Of a stretch of DNA of 64,000 bases, positions 21,234 to 44,720 are shown piece after piece. The position numbers and the translations under genes were made by a program. The notes beneath the pieces are model-generated. The model was not told the origin of the DNA. It saw only the letters and a list, made by a program, of their open reading frames with translations, and made no database searches. Positions within the stretch are counted from its first letter, which is position 1. Each line of letters starts with the position of its first letter. The stretch lies in the sequence record MW845759.1; one strand, given 5' to 3'.

Positions 21234-21710
21234 ATGTACCTGATAGATGTAGAACGCGATAAAATCCCAGCGGGAATCTTCCCCGGTTTGAACGAATGGC
21301 TCGATGATACCAACTCAGTGCGCACAAACCCGGTAACGTTTACGTTGGCGGTGGAAGATGATGTCGCGGTGGGTGTCTGCATTCACGAGCCCGGCCATCT
21401 GTTGTATCTGGCGATTGCCAAGGATGAACGCCGTCAGGGTTACGGCACGAAATTATTGAAGAATGCGTTGGGCACATTTAACGGCCCTACATGGCTTCGT
21501 ATCGACCCCAAAAATACCGAAGGGGTTTGCTTCTTCTCATCTCATGGCGCTATTATAGACCGTGTACACGTCGCAGAAGAAGGTGCTGTGTATCATCGTA
21601 TGGTACTTGGTACCAAATCGAAACGTGTAATCCCGCCAGAGGAGACTTCTTTACTTCATTATTTAGCTAACACACCTGTGTTCGTTTCGGTGGCGGGTAA
21701 GATCGTATAA
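21234..21710 (+). CDS. GNAT family N-acetyltransferase
   Basis: Acetyl-CoA motif A IAKDERRQGYGTKLL and motif B NTEGVCFFSSHG. Confidence 0.75.
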   Translation: MYLIDVERDKIPAGIFPGLNEWLDDTNSVRTNPVTFTLAVEDDVAVGVCIHEPGHLLYLAIAKDERRQGYGTKLLKNALGTFNGPTWLRIDPKNTEGVCFFSSHGAIIDRVHVAEEGAVYHRMVLGTKSKRVIPPEETSLLHYLANTPVFVSVAGKIV

Positions 21711-26781: not shown

Positions 26782-26815
26782 GCAGGGGGCAAATAGCCCC
26801 CTGCCCTTTTATTTT
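26782..26815 (+). terminator. intrinsic terminator
   Basis: gcaggggg-caaatag-ccccctgc plus T tract. Confidence 0.8.
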
Positions 26816-26826
26816 GTCAGTTTGCG

Positions 26827-26863
26827 AACGAAAATAATCTCAGATATATATTACTTTAGTGAA
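26827..26863 (+). promoter_or_regulatory. putative early (virion RNAP) promoter
   Basis: aacgaaaataatctcagatatatattactttagtgaa; an 18-nt core (tcagatatatattacttt) identical to the 1229 copy. Confidence 0.75.
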
Positions 26864-28834: not shown

Positions 28835-29887
28835 ATGGACAATTTAGACCATGACCTGGACAAAGATTTCGCCACACTGTCGGAAGACTTCGAAACAGTT
28901 CTGGCGCTTGAGTCCTTAGGCGTTAAACCAAATGATGTCGCTATGCTAACCATCGCCAAACGTTGGGTAGCGCATGAGTATTTCGGCGAAGGTGGTGTGG
29001 AGTTAGGTAAACGCGTAACTAAAGACACAGCGAAACTGGCTTTACGCGGGGCGGTATCTGGCACCAAGAAACTCTCATCACATTTGGCCAATACTTTTAT
29101 GGAGTGGGCAAAAGCACGAGATGGGCAAATTCGTGCCAAGCTTTCTGACGCTACCTCGAAAGGGGAGATGTTGAAGAAGCGTGCCCAGAAACTCCAATCC
29201 GTGGTGCTCGGGATGAAGTCGGTTGAGAAACACGACATCAAAACCGGGAGCTGGACTTCAAAAGTTTGTCAGGAAGATAAAGTCAATGTACAAGCATGCA
29301 TTCAGCTGGCTCAGGGCCATGCTAATCTCGACGATATTGTGGAAGCCTACACCGTATACACCAAGTCCATTCTGGATGGGCCGGCCAAGCGTAAAGGTGA
29401 TCAGCTCGAGAAACTCGGCCATTCCTCCGCTAGCGCTGTAAAACGGGCGGCAGGTATTCTGGGCATCGTTCAGACCAAGGCGGTGTCGGCATACCCCCTG
29501 CCCGGCAATGTTATCGTGGTTGTCTCTAACCCAGAGACCCACACTGAACGTGTCCAGTTCGCTGTAGCACGTGACGGTGAGTACGGGGAGACTATTCCCT
29601 CGCTTTCAGTGCAGCAGTGTAAAAAAGCACTGAACGCCGCTGAAGCATTAAGTAAAGCCGTCTATCAGCGCGGAACAAAACGCGGTGTCTTCTCGTACAG
29701 CGGTATATACGACAATATCCAATCTCTTGAGGGTCAATTAGACCGTGACGATTTGTCTAACCGTGAAATACACGAGATTACCCAACGTTATAAAAACGCC
29801 ATTGAAGTAGAAGACGCCATTACTACTGCATTGGTTCGTGTCGCAGAAGGGCTGTTGGATTATGTCCAGCACTCAGCGAAATCTTAA
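28835..29887 (+). CDS. internal head (ejection-type) protein with propeptide
   Basis: Acidic N-terminus ending in LALE-SLG, matching the A-X-E prohead protease site of phiKZ/SPN3US-like phages; TATG late-promoter candidate at 28806. Confidence 0.65.
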   Translation: MDNLDHDLDKDFATLSEDFETVLALESLGVKPNDVAMLTIAKRWVAHEYFGEGGVELGKRVTKDTAKLALRGAVSGTKKLSSHLANTFMEWAKARDGQIRAKLSDATSKGEMLKKRAQKLQSVVLGMKSVEKHDIKTGSWTSKVCQEDKVNVQACIQLAQGHANLDDIVEAYTVYTKSILDGPAKRKGDQLEKLGHSSASAVKRAAGILGIVQTKAVSAYPLPGNVIVVVSNPETHTERVQFAVARDGEYGETIPSLSVQQCKKALNAAEALSKAVYQRGTKRGVFSYSGIYDNIQSLEGQLDRDDLSNREIHEITQRYKNAIEVEDAITTALVRVAEGLLDYVQHSAKS

Positions 29888-29938: not shown

Positions 29939-30415
29939 ATGGGCGAAATACGCGATGTTGAATTCGTGGTGTTTACGGATATGGACAGTGGTCTATATCG
30001 CCAACTGGAACCACAGCTGCTGGCATTACAGGCAGAGTTAACCAAACAAGAGCTGGCATCAGTTTTTGCGGCGATGGGGATTGAACCGAGAGATATTCCA
30101 CTGCCGCCGGCGAAACCGGATTGGTGGAAAGGTTCTTTATTGGTCGCGTATAACGCCGATCGTGTTCATGGGTTTGTCAGCCTTCGCAAGGACAGTGTGG
30201 AGACACAAGCGAAGATTAACAACCTCATTGTACACCAAGAGTCTCGTGGGTTTGGGATAGCGTCTGAGTTAATGGCTCGGGCGACTGAACAAGCACAAGG
30301 CGAAGGCTACACCAGCATAGTTTTAGAAGTGATGCACGATAATCCTGCGGCAGAAGCATTATACCGGAAACTCGGTTTCGTTTTCCTGACCAAAAAGATG
30401 TGCAAACTATTCTAA
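29939..30415 (+). CDS. GNAT family N-acetyltransferase (RimI-like)
   Basis: LIVHQESRGFGIASELM (motif A) and NPAAEALYRKLGF (motif B). Confidence 0.9.
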   Translation: MGEIRDVEFVVFTDMDSGLYRQLEPQLLALQAELTKQELASVFAAMGIEPRDIPLPPAKPDWWKGSLLVAYNADRVHGFVSLRKDSVETQAKINNLIVHQESRGFGIASELMARATEQAQGEGYTSIVLEVMHDNPAAEALYRKLGFVFLTKKMCKLF

Positions 30416-32669: not shown

Positions 32670-32705
32670 GATGCGCGTCCTGACTTCGGTCAGGACGACA
32701 TCAAT

Positions 32706-32736
32706 TATTTTTTCAGATATATTTTATTCTGATGAA
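32706..32736 (+). promoter_or_regulatory. putative early promoter upstream of the GNAT trio
   Basis: ttttttcagatatattttattctgatgaa matches the cagatata-tattac...tgaa family. Confidence 0.55.
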
Positions 32737-32784
32737 AATAACATGACAAAGTTATGCTATGCCGAAGAACCGTGGAGTAATAAA

Positions 32785-33642
32785 ATGAAGACCGTGGAAT
32801 TAACCTTGTCACATTTACATCGCAGCGAATGGATTAAACAGCTGAATGCGATGTCAGAGCATTACCCTGTCCGCAAGACGTTGCTGGACATGAAAAAGAA
32901 AGACGTCAAGATTGCTATTCAGGTGAACGATGATAATAAACTGATGGCTTTTCTTGCGTTGATTCCAACCGGTGTCCCGGGCGATTGCATGGGCCTGTGC
33001 TTTGGTAATGCACCGGGCGCTGCACCCAGCTTCGCAGAAGAGGCCATGCGTCTGTTCGACTTCAAAGTCCTGCGTATGCAAGTGCCGCAGAAACATTTCC
33101 ATCCCGAGGCTGAGCGCCTTGGTATCATGAAGAATTTCAATCTGCTCCATCGTCGTCTTCCGCCAGTAGGGGAAGCGCCAGAAGGGACAGAGCTGATTAG
33201 CGGTGAAGTCTTCCAAACCTTATCAGGTGAAGACATCGTTGCTGTACGTGACCTCCTTACCTACGCTGTGGGCGTGGAGGAGAAGTTTGACAAATTAGGC
33301 CGTGACCATCTGCGCCACTATAATAGCCAGCATGTCTTAAACCGCATGGACGACTTAGGCTTCTTTGCGCTGGTCTACCGTGTCGAGGGTAAAGTGTCGG
33401 GGCTGATTACCGCCCAAGCTGGTTGTGAATGGGTCGAGATAAACGGCCTAGCAGTTGCGCAGGAGCATCAGCGTAAAGGTATTGGCAGTAAATTAGTAAA
33501 CGGACTGATTCATCTGGTCAAAGAGTATTACGACCAGCATGCAGCCATGGTGTTCACCAACAACCTCCCGTCGTTGGCGTTATTCGAAAAACTAGGATTC
33601 GTTGAAGAGTCCGCACTATTCATGAAAATCGTTGAGGATTAA
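32785..33642 (+). CDS. tandem-domain GNAT acetyltransferase 1
   Basis: GGAG RBS before ATG 32785; C-terminal VAQEHQRKGIGSKL and NLPSLALFEKLGF; N-half looks like a degenerate GNAT (EAERLG). Confidence 0.85.
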   Translation: MKTVELTLSHLHRSEWIKQLNAMSEHYPVRKTLLDMKKKDVKIAIQVNDDNKLMAFLALIPTGVPGDCMGLCFGNAPGAAPSFAEEAMRLFDFKVLRMQVPQKHFHPEAERLGIMKNFNLLHRRLPPVGEAPEGTELISGEVFQTLSGEDIVAVRDLLTYAVGVEEKFDKLGRDHLRHYNSQHVLNRMDDLGFFALVYRVEGKVSGLITAQAGCEWVEINGLAVAQEHQRKGIGSKLVNGLIHLVKEYYDQHAAMVFTNNLPSLALFEKLGFVEESALFMKIVED

Positions 33643-33645
33643 TAG

Positions 33646-34515
33646 ATGGAATATGTACAGTTAGATGTTACGAGCGAAGCACCAATGCCCCTGTTCTCAG
33701 AAGAGATGCAGCATCTCATCTATGGCATGACTATGCAGGGTGGTTTGGTGTTCTTTGCACGTGATGAAGAAGCCGAAGAAGTTAAAGGCGTTCTTGGCGT
33801 GTTTCAATCACACATTCCGGGTGTGGTTGAAGTGGGCATGATGTACACATTCGGTGATAATGTGGACGGCGTCATTACGCGTGACTTTATTGACTTTATC
33901 ATGAAAGCCACCGATGCGAAAGTGATGCGTTGCCAGCTCAGCGACGACCCAAGTCGTGAAATGGTGGCGGAGCTGGGCTTTACTCACGAATCGACCATTC
34001 AGGGTATTGATTTGGGTGAGCCGGTGGAACAGGCGACGGAAGGGGTTATCAGTATCGCCGGTAAAGGCTTTGATTACCTCAATATCGAACAACGTAATCA
34101 GCTCCGTCAACTGATTCGTCTGGGCGCAGAGGAAGAGTCGAGCTATACGCCGAACCTTCACATTCCAAGCGACAACGACATCGATACTATCTTCGCGGAC
34201 ATTGCCGAGTCGAAGTATGACGTGTACGTGCGCCTGGAAGACGGTGCGGTTATCGCTCTACTGATGATCGACCCGACCAACCCGCAGTCTGCCGTTATCG
34301 GTTCGGTGGTGGTGCACCCTGACCACCGCTTAAAGGGCATCGGTCGTCTGCTGGTCGCACAGGCTGTCTCTGACTACGGCGATGCCGAGCGTTTAGTGCT
34401 GGCGGTGACGTTACAGTCTACGCCGCATCTGCGTGAGTTCTTCGGTAACTGTGGATTGATTCCAGTTGCCACCGTTCACAAATTTGCCTCAGCCGAGGCG
34501 CAGGAGGTCGCATGA
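33646..34515 (+). CDS. tandem-domain GNAT acetyltransferase 2
   Basis: VVHPDHRLKGIGRLLV motif A; N-half ends MVAELGF; same architecture as the upstream gene. Confidence 0.85.
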   Translation: MEYVQLDVTSEAPMPLFSEEMQHLIYGMTMQGGLVFFARDEEAEEVKGVLGVFQSHIPGVVEVGMMYTFGDNVDGVITRDFIDFIMKATDAKVMRCQLSDDPSREMVAELGFTHESTIQGIDLGEPVEQATEGVISIAGKGFDYLNIEQRNQLRQLIRLGAEEESSYTPNLHIPSDNDIDTIFADIAESKYDVYVRLEDGAVIALLMIDPTNPQSAVIGSVVVHPDHRLKGIGRLLVAQAVSDYGDAERLVLAVTLQSTPHLREFFGNCGLIPVATVHKFASAEAQEVA

Positions 34516-35402
34516 TTGTAGCCGGGCATAAATCCGATATTCCTGCCGTCGTGTGGGAAAGTGCTATCAAAAAGATGCCGGACGAAATTGTTCGGCAGTC
34601 TCGTCACGCGAACATCAAGTTCATTATCGAAACTGACGACGACGGTGAAGTAACTGCCTTTGGCGTGGGTGAAACCATGACGGTGTATTATGTCATGGCG
34701 GGGATTTACACTGTTAACGACAGCCCGAGCCCGAACTTCATGGCGGAAGGTATGCGTCAACTGGGGTTAAAGGTTGCCACCCTGTCCGTGGAATCTGACG
34801 ATGAAGTGTTTAAAGAGATAGGCTTTGTTGTCGCCAATCGTCTTTACGCTTCCACGCCAGAAGTACCGCTTGATACACCGCCCTTTGTTACCAGCATGGA
34901 TCTCGTGCCAGAGTGTGATTGGCCGAAATACGAAATGCTGATGGCGATGGACTTAGAAGTTCATAAACCGACAGAAGACGGTCGGGGGTACGAAGCGCCG
35001 TGTCGTGAATTGTTTAAGAAAATCAAAACCAACCCTGAATTGGCAGTGGTGAAACTGAAAGACGGACGACTGCATGGCATCATGATGATGATGAAGTCAT
35101 TGATGCGTCCTGACGACTGTACACCGCTGTTGCAGGCCGACCTGTACGTCCCGCAGGCATTGTTAGCTTTACCGGGTGAACCCGGCGAGTTAACCGTTCC
35201 TGATGAACTGTTACATTACGCTACCCGACTGTTAGAGTCGCAAAATAAGCGTATGGTCATCCAGTCTGAAAGGAACGACGGTGAAATTTATTTACGAGAT
35301 GTGCTGAAATACCAATATATTTACAGCACGTGCCAGTATTACGTCCAAGAAGAGGACGAACTGGTTGAAGCAACCGCAGATGCTATGGACGACCCATCCT
35401 GA
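34512..35402 (+). CDS. degenerate tandem GNAT-like protein 3
   Basis: Similar size and N-half pattern (VFKEIGF) to the two upstream genes; motif A not recognisable. Confidence 0.5.
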   Translation: MIVAGHKSDIPAVVWESAIKKMPDEIVRQSRHANIKFIIETDDDGEVTAFGVGETMTVYYVMAGIYTVNDSPSPNFMAEGMRQLGLKVATLSVESDDEVFKEIGFVVANRLYASTPEVPLDTPPFVTSMDLVPECDWPKYEMLMAMDLEVHKPTEDGRGYEAPCRELFKKIKTNPELAVVKLKDGRLHGIMMMMKSLMRPDDCTPLLQADLYVPQALLALPGEPGELTVPDELLHYATRLLESQNKRMVIQSERNDGEIYLRDVLKYQYIYSTCQYYVQEEDELVEATADAMDDPS

Positions 35403-35481
35403 GCACTTCCGTTTAACGTAGCGGAACTGTGAGGAATTAATTCCTTCAAGCTATGCGCAATAATCCCATTATGGAGTAACC

Positions 35482-35745
35482 ATGAGTCAGAATATTAACC
35501 GCAAAGTCAGTGCCAAGAAAGATGTGTACTATGCCGTGGGTGAGGTCGTCCGCGGGGTGATTGACAAGACTGGTGTTTTACACCTCGCTGTGGCCACCGA
35601 AGTGACACGCGGCGACCGCCGTATGTTAGATCAGCTGGTCATTAAGGCAAAACGTCGCGACGGTGTTCGTAGCGTCAAGGAAATCCCGGGGACCACAATG
35701 GAATTGGTCGAAGGTGAAATCCATGTTCGGCGCATCGCTGCGTGA
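35482..35745 (+). CDS. hypothetical protein, 87 aa
   Basis: GGAG RBS. Confidence 0.75.
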   Translation: MSQNINRKVSAKKDVYYAVGEVVRGVIDKTGVLHLAVATEVTRGDRRMLDQLVIKAKRRDGVRSVKEIPGTTMELVEGEIHVRRIAA

Positions 35746-36137
35746 CGACGTCTAAGTTCGATCTTAAAGTACACCCAAACCGGACACACCGTTGTGATGA
35801 GAACATTGCAAACCTGTCCACAATGATCGAGTTGAAGGGCCCCCGTTCTCCAGAGGGCCTGATACGTATTCGTCGAAAGTTAATGCTCGTCCATTCGTAC
35901 ATCTATTATAAGGTGGGGGTGAGTGCTATCTCAGATGATCTGTGGCAGCGTTGGGCCTATGACCTAGTGGTGCTACAAGACAGTTTCCCAGACTTGTGCA
36001 ACATCGATTATTACGACGATGCATTTGTAGATTGGGACGGTTCTACCGGGATGGACCTTCCGTACGACGACACTATCGTGGCTGAGGCTGTGAAGCTGTA
36101 TCGTATGTACACTGGTCAAGTTTTGGACGTCGTTTAA
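35742..36137 (+). CDS. stand-alone NAD-dependent DNA ligase domain Ia-like protein
   Basis: RRKLMLVHSYIYYKVGVSAISDDLWQRW...LVVLQ resembles the LigA N-terminal H..YY....P.ISD.EYD.L..EL..LE motif. Confidence 0.55.
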   Translation: MTTSKFDLKVHPNRTHRCDENIANLSTMIELKGPRSPEGLIRIRRKLMLVHSYIYYKVGVSAISDDLWQRWAYDLVVLQDSFPDLCNIDYYDDAFVDWDGSTGMDLPYDDTIVAEAVKLYRMYTGQVLDVV

Positions 36138-36179
36138 CGAACGCCGAGGACGAAACTATCGTCACTCAAGGGGGTTCGT

Positions 36180-36335
36180 ATGTCTGTAGCTATCCTGACG
36201 GGTGCATTAATCTCCGCGTTCGTATGGGAGTGCCTGTCCTGGTTTTTTCGACTAGGCGGCATTCCTGTACTTCAGCGCGTGGGTATGATGGGGGTCTGGG
36301 TCGGTTTCTATTACGCCCTGTTCCACATCGATTAA
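36180..36335 (+). CDS. small two-TM membrane protein, 51 aa (not in ORF track)
   Basis: AAGGGGG RBS; MSVAILTGALISAFVWECLSWFFRLGG...FYYALFHID*. Confidence 0.6.
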   Translation: MSVAILTGALISAFVWECLSWFFRLGGIPVLQRVGMMGVWVGFYYALFHID

Positions 36336-36365
36336 AAAAGCTGATTCCTCTGGGAGTGAAGAATC

Positions 36366-36551
36366 ATGTATAGCGTAGCAATTGTACCACAACGTAAATT
36401 TGGCGCGGCACGGCGAGTTAGTGCTGTCCAGCTTTACGCACAGCGCAACAATCTCGACTACAACGTAGCAGCAAGTCAGCTGGCGGACACGCCTCTCAAC
36501 GATATCCTTCGTGAGCTCGGTCTTTTACCGAAAGAAGAAGCTGCAGTTTGA
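36366..36551 (+). CDS. hypothetical protein, 61 aa
   Basis: GGGAG RBS; terminator-like hairpin at 36562-36598. Confidence 0.7.
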   Translation: MYSVAIVPQRKFGAARRVSAVQLYAQRNNLDYNVAASQLADTPLNDILRELGLLPKEEAAV

Positions 36552-36612
36552 TTTAAGTGGGCGTCCTCCTCGGGGGACGTCATTTTATCTTTTTTATTTG
36601 GAGTAATCAGAA

Positions 36613-44689: not shown

Positions 44690-44720
44690 AATTTTTACAG
44701 ATAGATATTATCTGTATGAA
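44687..44720 (+). promoter_or_regulatory. putative early promoter
   Basis: aaaatttttacagatagatattatctgtatgaa matches the early motif family. Confidence 0.6.

Follow-up and report, generated by a model that had tools for sequence, protein, structure and literature searches.

In the tandem GCN5-related N-acetyltransferases (GNATs) that have been characterised, only the C-terminal lobe is catalytic and the two lobes form a joint substrate cleft (PMC10936415). The described proteins closest to the locus reported here are MshD (1OZP), C. acetobutylicum GlmA (5KF1/5KGH), CBG/ORF14 (2WPW) and MAB_4324 (7Q3A), each one chain of ~290-340 amino acids (aa) with two GNAT lobes, and VipF (Lpg0103/Lha0223), a Legionella effector in which a tandem GNAT is used by a parasite in its host. 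The C-lobe of VipF is catalytic and its N-lobe is not, its target binds in the inter-lobe cleft, and it acetylates the host translation factor eIF3-K (PMC10936415). A published functional precedent among phages is Rac (gp28 of Pseudomonas phage LUZ19), a GNAT that needs its acetyl-CoA site to alter host proteins (PMC7552054; PMC7824862), and a Rac-like action on host proteins has been predicted for jumbo-phage GNATs in general (PMC7824862). Here we describe a cassette of three paralogous genes, g1, g2 and g3, with a predicted tandem-GNAT architecture, in a 64,000-nucleotide stretch of DNA (the window) from Erwinia phage pEa_SNUABM_38. The 2.9-kb stretch that holds the trio has 100% identity with the record of this phage (MW845759.1), in which a position equals the window position + 62000. 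A literature search found no paper pairing 'tandem GNAT' with phage, and none that describes the cassette or mentions these genes.

The reading that we favour, with middling confidence, takes g1 and g2 to be early acetyltransferases and g3 a non-catalytic paralog, the three tandem-GNAT proteins being encoded behind one early promoter. The genes are as follows, with limits from the list of open reading frames (ORFs); motif A is the acetyl-CoA pyrophosphate site in the beta4-alpha3 loop of GNATs (Q/R-x-x-G-x-G/A).

32785-33642, + strand: g1, 285 aa; predicted tandem GNAT, N-lobe without motif A, C-lobe GNAT domain with QRKGIG (33469-33486)
33646-34515, + strand: g2, 289 aa; full-length paralog of g1, C-lobe GNAT domain with RLKGIG (34327-34344)
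34512-35402, + strand: g3, 296 aa; divergent paralog with two predicted GNAT-fold lobes (aa 1-113 and 126-277)

Both g1 and g2 matched Pfam PF00583 in the C-lobe well above the cut-off of 20.7 bits (g1 53 bits, E-value (E) 5e-14, aa 201-286 counted on a 299-aa translation from 32743; g2 40.3 bits, E 4e-10), and a profile built from the two gave 152 GNAT matches among solved structures, always in the C-lobe. Motif A lies inside the PF00583 matches (g1 aa 229-234, g2 aa 228-233), occurs only in the C-lobes of these two genes and is absent from their N-lobes, which would fit the tandem-GNAT rule of C-lobe catalysis. It is retained in all g1 orthologs, as QGQGIA or QGQGIG in the P0007/L009 lineage. 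A language-model feature search returned GNAT for g1 and also GNAT/Acetyltransf_18 two-domain proteins, and the GenBank orthologs of g1 and g2 already carry the label 'putative GCN5-related N-acetyltransferase'. The first-pass annotation, made from the DNA letters alone, had reported motif A in the first two genes and its loss from the third, and both observations hold: at the corresponding position (~aa 220-230, 35169-35201) g3 has a variable loop.

The genes g1, g2 and g3 are paralogs, and g3 is the divergent member that lacks the motif. Comparison of the g1 and g2 families by hhalign gave 97.7% over 243 columns, the N-lobes of g1 and g3 aligned at 92.9% (E 3.6e-7), and the g3 family aligned to g1+g2 at 80% (E 1.4e-5). 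This last alignment is colinear, spans 164 columns and reaches from the N-lobe as far as the first half of the C-lobe. When a hidden Markov model of g3 was run across the 212 ORFs of the window, the best non-self match was g1 (E 2e-4). A three-family MAFFT alignment of 17 sequences was colinear end to end with only three invariant columns, one of which is the glycine of the N-half endings ERLG, ELGF and EIGF; these endings had been pointed out in the first-pass annotation and are real. The g3 family has invariant motifs of its own, such as PTExGRGYE (aa 153-161) in the alpha1'-alpha2' loop of the C-lobe; in GNATs the alpha1-alpha2 loop usually shapes the acceptor site. The gene itself has no Pfam or NCBIfam match, its profile had no match among solved-structure sequences even at E 10, and an exhaustive profile search of 1.84 billion representatives returned three clusters only, all of them orthologs, with no distant relatives. 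Within the chains, hhalign of N-lobe against C-lobe gave no internal duplication signal above 10%. The PHROG assignments follow the same division (g1 and g2 in PHROG 8663, g3 in PHROG 22414), and g3 is a 'hypothetical protein' in every record and throughout PHROG 22414; on the predicted structure and the alignments it could now be labelled a tandem-GNAT-fold paralog.

The two-lobed architecture of g3 was predicted with AlphaFold2. A model from its own six sequences was unusable (predicted local distance difference test (pLDDT) 45), and one from the 17-sequence, three-family alignment was confident (pLDDT 86.8; predicted template-modelling (TM) score 0.74) and contained two lobes, aa 2-113 and 126-277, each with the order beta1-alpha1-alpha2-beta2-beta3-beta4-alpha3-beta5-alpha4-beta6. 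Foldseek searches of the Protein Data Bank with this model returned tandem GNATs at the top (MAB_4324, 3TT2, VipF, GlmA, MshD and CBG; E 1e-9 to 1e-11) and FemX, MprF and Eis as weaker matches. A VIA comparison gave Z 11.5 for MshD and Z 9.5-10.9 for single-domain GNATs on either lobe, and MshD, GlmA, CBG and MAB_4324 were top matches by both methods. Nearly all matches among Swiss-Prot models were MshD, the AFDB cluster matches were GNAT proteins, and uncharacterised bacterial two-lobed GNATs in the ESM Atlas reached TM 0.58-0.63 over 213-251 residues. Among the viral models of BFVD, those of g2 orthologs, Kwan gp131 and the Phobos g3 ortholog scored TM 0.54-0.61 against the g3 model, that of the Derbicus g2 ortholog scoring 0.60. 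The g3 model thus predicts a GNAT fold for the third gene, and full-length paralogy together with the BFVD ortholog models (TM 0.48-0.61 against g3) suggests that g1 and g2 are likewise two-lobed, in agreement with the tandem-GNAT architecture first proposed for all three. In the same BFVD search, several uncharacterised proteins of 213-276 aa from Erwinia phages Kwan, Huxley and phiEaH2 matched the g3 model (Foldseek E 1e-5 to 1e-11), and these models hint that Erwinia jumbo phages may encode further, so far hidden proteins of GNAT fold. Kwan gp133 (276 aa), picked by its length as the likely 276-aa Kwan protein of BFVD, had no sequence link with g1, g2 or g3.

Likeness to Eis-type and MshD-type enzymes, raised in the first-pass annotation, survives as a likeness of fold to MshD and goes no further. 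Against the MshD equivalog model (NCBIfam TIGR03448, cut-off 163.1 bits), g1 scored 17 bits, g2 24.5 bits and g3 had no match. MshD, GlmA, CBG and MAB_4324 also differ from the trio in sequence (8-13% identity) and in lobe orientation (whole-chain TM 0.32-0.41), and these enzymes are single genes of cellular metabolism, whereas the phage cassette is triplicated with one motif-less member. Eis proteins are ~400 aa long, form hexamers and have a third, SCP2-like domain at the C-terminus. Eis has two GNAT lobes and was among the fold matches of g3 (6RFT), at a TM of only 0.28-0.29; unlike it, the proteins described here are 285-296 aa long and have no third domain, the g3 model ending after the second lobe. 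The best whole-chain TM to the g3 model among solved structures was that of VipF (0.43-0.46), which differs from the trio in having no detectable sequence relationship to it, an N-lobe that still binds acetyl-CoA, a single protein and a eukaryotic target. Rac differs in being a single gene and in coming from a phage of another family, which relies on host RNA polymerase.

Loss of motif A had led the first-pass annotation to call the third gene degenerate, a description that its pattern of substitution contradicts. The ratio of nonsynonymous to synonymous substitution (dN/dS) against Derbicus was 0.014 for g1, 0.069 for g2 and 0.059 for g3, and was low in both lobes of each gene; protein identity with Cronobacter phage CR5 was 76%, 50% and 75%, respectively, and g3 has 97% protein identity with its Derbicus ortholog at 92% DNA identity. 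We conclude that g3 is kept and is not eroding, because it is under strong purifying selection (dN/dS 0.06) and its identity with CR5 is near that of g1. The fastest-evolving member of the trio is g2.

The three genes occur in the same order after a thymidylate kinase gene (tmk) in six lineages, namely the SNUABM_38/EarlPhillipIV/Derbicus group, CR5, Phobos, and the metagenomic contigs L009 and L012, and in the library of 1.84 billion proteins the g3 family was confined to them. A word-index search for homologs returned no more than 3-5 proteins per gene, all from phage lineages. Across the trio stretch, nucleotide identity is 92% with EarlPhillipIV and Derbicus and 75% with CR5, all of which belong, with pEa_SNUABM_38, to the genus Derbicusvirus. 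Wellingtonvirus and Machinavirus phages each have one homologous two-lobed GNAT, Kwan gp131 (317 aa) and ChrisDB gp120 (315 aa), and their homology to g1 and g2 is genuine (hhalign 98.4% across 206 columns, the end of the N-lobe among them). In ChrisDB, tmk and then the promoter motif shared with the trio precede the GNAT gene. In both phages there is one gene and not three, with no g3-type partner detectable by sequence, and we regard the triplication as a feature of the Derbicusvirus lineage alone.

Translational coupling of the trio is visible in the DNA, as the first-pass annotation had said of three tandem genes of about 290 aa. At the first junction, the TAA of g1 is followed by TAG and then by the ATG of g2, with a Shine-Dalgarno sequence GAGGA at 33634-33638; g2 and g3 overlap in ATGA, with AGGAGG at 34502-34507. 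In L009 and L012 the ORFs called for g1 and g2 share 29 nucleotides. An alternative g1 start at the in-frame ATG 32743, which would add 14 residues (299 aa) in pEa_SNUABM_38 only, was rejected. We place the start at 32785 because it has GGAG 7 nucleotides upstream, because a 1-nucleotide deletion between the two ATGs in Phobos puts the upstream one out of frame, and because the metagenomic relative L009 has ATA where pEa_SNUABM_38 has the upstream ATG; comparison with these relatives indicates that 32743-32784 is probably part of the g1 5′ leader.

The signals around the trio, and the ORFs that follow it, are:

32670-32713, + strand: intrinsic-terminator-like hairpin; inner 9-bp GC-rich stem (32676-32697) with a UUCG loop, then a U-run
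32703-32740, + strand: phiKZ-type early-promoter-like motif; AT-rich, then TTTCAGATATATTTTAT (core 32711-32727), then TGATGAA
35397-35435, + strand: hairpin just 3′ of the g3 stop; inner stem 35407-35426
35482-36551, + strand: four small ORFs (87, 131, 51 and 61 aa), from the ORF list
36560-36581, + strand: first strong intrinsic-terminator-like site 3′ of the promoter; 9-bp stem with six GC pairs, then ATTTTATCTT

The phiKZ-like early consensus is AT-rich, has TATATTAC (phiKZ) or ATATTAT, a flanking TTTCARR and a downstream GTG, and lies upstream of operons in phiKZ, 201phi2-1, OBP and N1M2 (PMC7058600). The motif that the first-pass annotation had placed before the trio belongs to this class: its core (32711-32727) matches the phiKZ/201phi2-1/OBP/N1M2 consensus, and 32703-32740 fits the N1M2/OBP form with ~2 mismatches. 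The pattern TYWCAGATAKATWTTAY occurs at four sites in the window (1240, 26838, 32711 and 44695) and at none in 100 shuffles, a count that is partly circular because the pattern was derived from those four sites. All four align with one another, lie on the + strand and fall in gaps between the surrounding listed or annotated + strand ORFs. Folding of the hairpin at 32670-32713 gave -20.2 kcal/mol (z = -3.96), and this hairpin marks the end of the thymidylate-kinase unit that lies 5′ of the trio. Both this hairpin and the motif are kept in Derbicus, CR5, Phobos and L009, every relative has the motif 5′ of g1, and conservation of the block of hairpin, promoter and leader (mean column identity 92% in four phages) exceeds that of the coding DNA; in ChrisDB, of a different genus, the motif comes just after tmk. 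We would place the start of the trio transcript ~10 nucleotides downstream of the core. Promoters of this class have been linked in phiKZ and 201phi2-1 to early genes and to the RNA polymerase of the virion (PMC11512511), and by analogy with these two phages the trio would be expressed early. Sequencing runs that matched the phage were DNA metagenomes in which its share was low, none of them RNA.

How far the transcript extends is less sharply defined than the 'operon of three' of the first-pass annotation, in which the coupling of the trio stands and the downstream limit may not. The 90-nucleotide gap 3′ of g3 folds at -20.4 kcal/mol (z = -1.76), and the CCGC/GCGG stem of its hairpin is kept in CR5 and Phobos with differing loop and flanks; this hairpin may terminate transcription weakly or act as a stabilising element. 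The pattern TYWCAGATAKATWTTAY gave no early-promoter motif between 32727 and 44695. As the first strong terminator is at 36560-36581, where the transcription unit probably ends at the latest, the four small ORFs may share the trio transcript.

On the reading that we favour, the virion RNA polymerase that phiKZ-like phages carry would read the trio promoter at the start of infection. The N-lobe of g1 and g2, which has no acetyl-CoA motif, would help to form the acceptor cleft, and their C-lobe would bind acetyl-CoA through the motif A loop and acetylate an amine on a host protein or small molecule. Derived from a common ancestor with g1 and g2, g3 would have lost the acetyl-CoA loop and might serve as their specificity or regulatory partner, or might bind ligands of the same class as they do. 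That g3 most likely acts without catalysis is argued by the loss of this loop while the lobes and the private motifs remain under strong selection.

Several observations weigh against this reading. The alignment behind the confident g3 model contained the GNAT-bearing g1 and g2 sequences, which could pull the C-lobe toward GNAT, and the g3 C-lobe alone aligned only weakly with GNAT (48.8% over 34 columns). Against the worry that the fold was imposed by the paralog rows, the low-confidence model is a partial counterweight: its order of helices and strands was broadly similar, without strands for N-lobe beta5 and beta6 and C-lobe beta4. Whole-chain TM of g3 against solved tandem GNATs was 0.27-0.46, and with values of at most 0.46 the arrangement of its lobes differs from theirs. 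Characterised tandem GNATs are moreover self-contained enzymes. A tyrosine at the motif B position commonly serves as general acid in GNATs; it is present in the solved GNATs 3LD2 and Naa30 and is phenylalanine in all g1 orthologs and most g2 orthologs. In L009 and L012 the first glycine of the g2 motif A is aspartate (RLKDFG and RLNDYG). These two substitutions make catalytic strength uncertain, above all that of g2. The g2 orthologs concerned are L009:5953-6843 and L012:6001-6894, and the substitution suggests that g2 may be drifting toward a non-catalytic state in that lineage.

Of the other explanations, the one that survives best, although we think it unlikely, is that the three proteins are independent enzymes that form no complex and whose substrates are small molecules and not host proteins, for instance polyamines, amino sugars, compounds like aminoglycosides or an amine used in host signalling; g3 would then add a third specificity or act as a sponge for ligands. 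Among the closest structural relatives, those whose substrates are known do act on small molecules (MshD; GlmA, a glucosamine N-acetyltransferase; CBG, of the clavulanate pathway), and there are weak NCBIfam similarities to phosphinothricin, AAC(3)-I and spermidine acetyltransferases, but the latter all score far below the curated cut-offs, VipF, which has the same fold, acetylates a protein (PMC10936415) and Rac acts on host proteins (PMC7552054). Related genera have one copy, so a complex is not obligatory; the tight coupling of the trio and its co-retention in six lineages nevertheless fit a joint function better. Carried to its furthest point, joint function would mean that g1, g2 and g3 form an obligate hetero-oligomeric acetyltransferase in which a dead g3 provides target recognition or allostery, and which disables a host system such as a defence protein or the translation apparatus in the first minutes of infection. 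We regard this stronger proposal as improbable.

A further possibility, to which we give somewhat less credence again, is that g3 is an active GNAT-fold transferase with another donor, for example aminoacyl-tRNA, like FemX, MprF, L/F-transferase or phage Mu Mom. It would account for the loss of the pyrophosphate-binding motif A while other motifs stay strongly conserved. The fold matches include, at E ~1e-7, FemX, the MprF C-domain and peptide synthases that depend on aminoacyl-tRNA, and use of charged tRNA by a viral enzyme of GNAT fold has been documented (PMC13219725). Those matches are, however, weaker (TM 0.29-0.37 versus up to 0.46) and expected for any two-lobed GNAT model, and the nearest sequence relatives of g3, g1 and g2, carry the acetyl-CoA motif.

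We consider it very unlikely that the trio takes part in nucleotide or DNA modification, for instance by acetylating an amino-bearing modified base or nucleotide. The neighbourhood could suggest it, with tmk (Pfam PF02223) directly 5′ of the trio, a thymidylate-synthase-family gene ~2 kb downstream in relatives and a tmk-GNAT neighbourhood also in ChrisDB, and GNAT-superfamily DNA modifiers exist in jumbo phages (PMC7824862). A terminator and the trio's own early promoter nevertheless separate it from tmk, no other hypermodification genes were seen in the neighbourhood, and Pfam and NCBIfam scans gave no similarity to Mom-type GNATs. Least credible of all, and already disfavoured, is the idea that the triplication is over-read and g3 is unrelated to g1 and g2 or a decaying remnant, for which the lack of any Pfam, NCBIfam or PDB sequence match, an hhalign value of only 10% between g2 and g3 and the poor first model could be cited, against the N-lobe and g1+g2 alignments given above, the low dN/dS with protein identity to Derbicus exceeding DNA identity, and retention in all six lineages.

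The phage itself belongs to the nucleus-forming phiKZ-like lineage: a CR5-like phage has been assigned to Chimalliviridae, the chimallin-encoding, nucleus-forming clade (bioRxiv 10.1101/2024.10.29.620934). Its phiKZ-like nature is supported by a 350-aa ORF in the window (28835-29887, + strand) whose match to PF12699 (E 6e-11) places it among the phiKZ-like internal head proteins. The window holds two more, single-domain GNAT genes of 158 aa each (21234-21710 and 29939-30415, both + strand); one has a weak match (PF13508, E 3.5e-6) and the other a strong one (PF00583, E 2.8e-18) with an EarlPhillipIV ortholog annotated as RimI-like. Together with the trio they make at least five GNAT-fold genes within 15 kb of pEa_SNUABM_38. 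PADLOC defence models gave no match. Further early-promoter-like sites at 1240-1256, 26838-26854 and 44695-44711 (all + strand) mark candidate early transcription units, that at 26838 lying directly after a terminator hairpin (26782-26804) and ahead of a PhoH-family gene. Two genes after g3 and before the 36560 terminator, the 131-aa ORF (35742-36137, + strand) encodes a stand-alone NAD+-binding domain Ia of NAD-dependent DNA ligases (PF22745, E 2.3e-29) without an adenylation domain, for which the annotation of its Phobos ortholog as 'putative NAD-dependent DNA ligase' is overstated.

The protein type, the fold and the general idea of such a phage enzyme are already known, as is the GNAT label of g1 and g2; what is new is the identification of g3 as a conserved motif-less tandem-GNAT paralog, the predicted two-lobed architecture for all three proteins and the putative phiKZ-type early promoter of the cassette. 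Phage GNATs are widely annotated and few, Rac among them (PMC7552054), have been tied to a target, and the early cytoplasmic effectors of nucleus-forming jumbo phages are poorly understood. Judged from its sequence, the cassette is a clean, conserved and probably early-expressed candidate for a host-modifying module in these phages, and a selected motif-less paralog beside two motif-bearing ones is a natural test case for the retention of pseudoenzymes in phage genomes.

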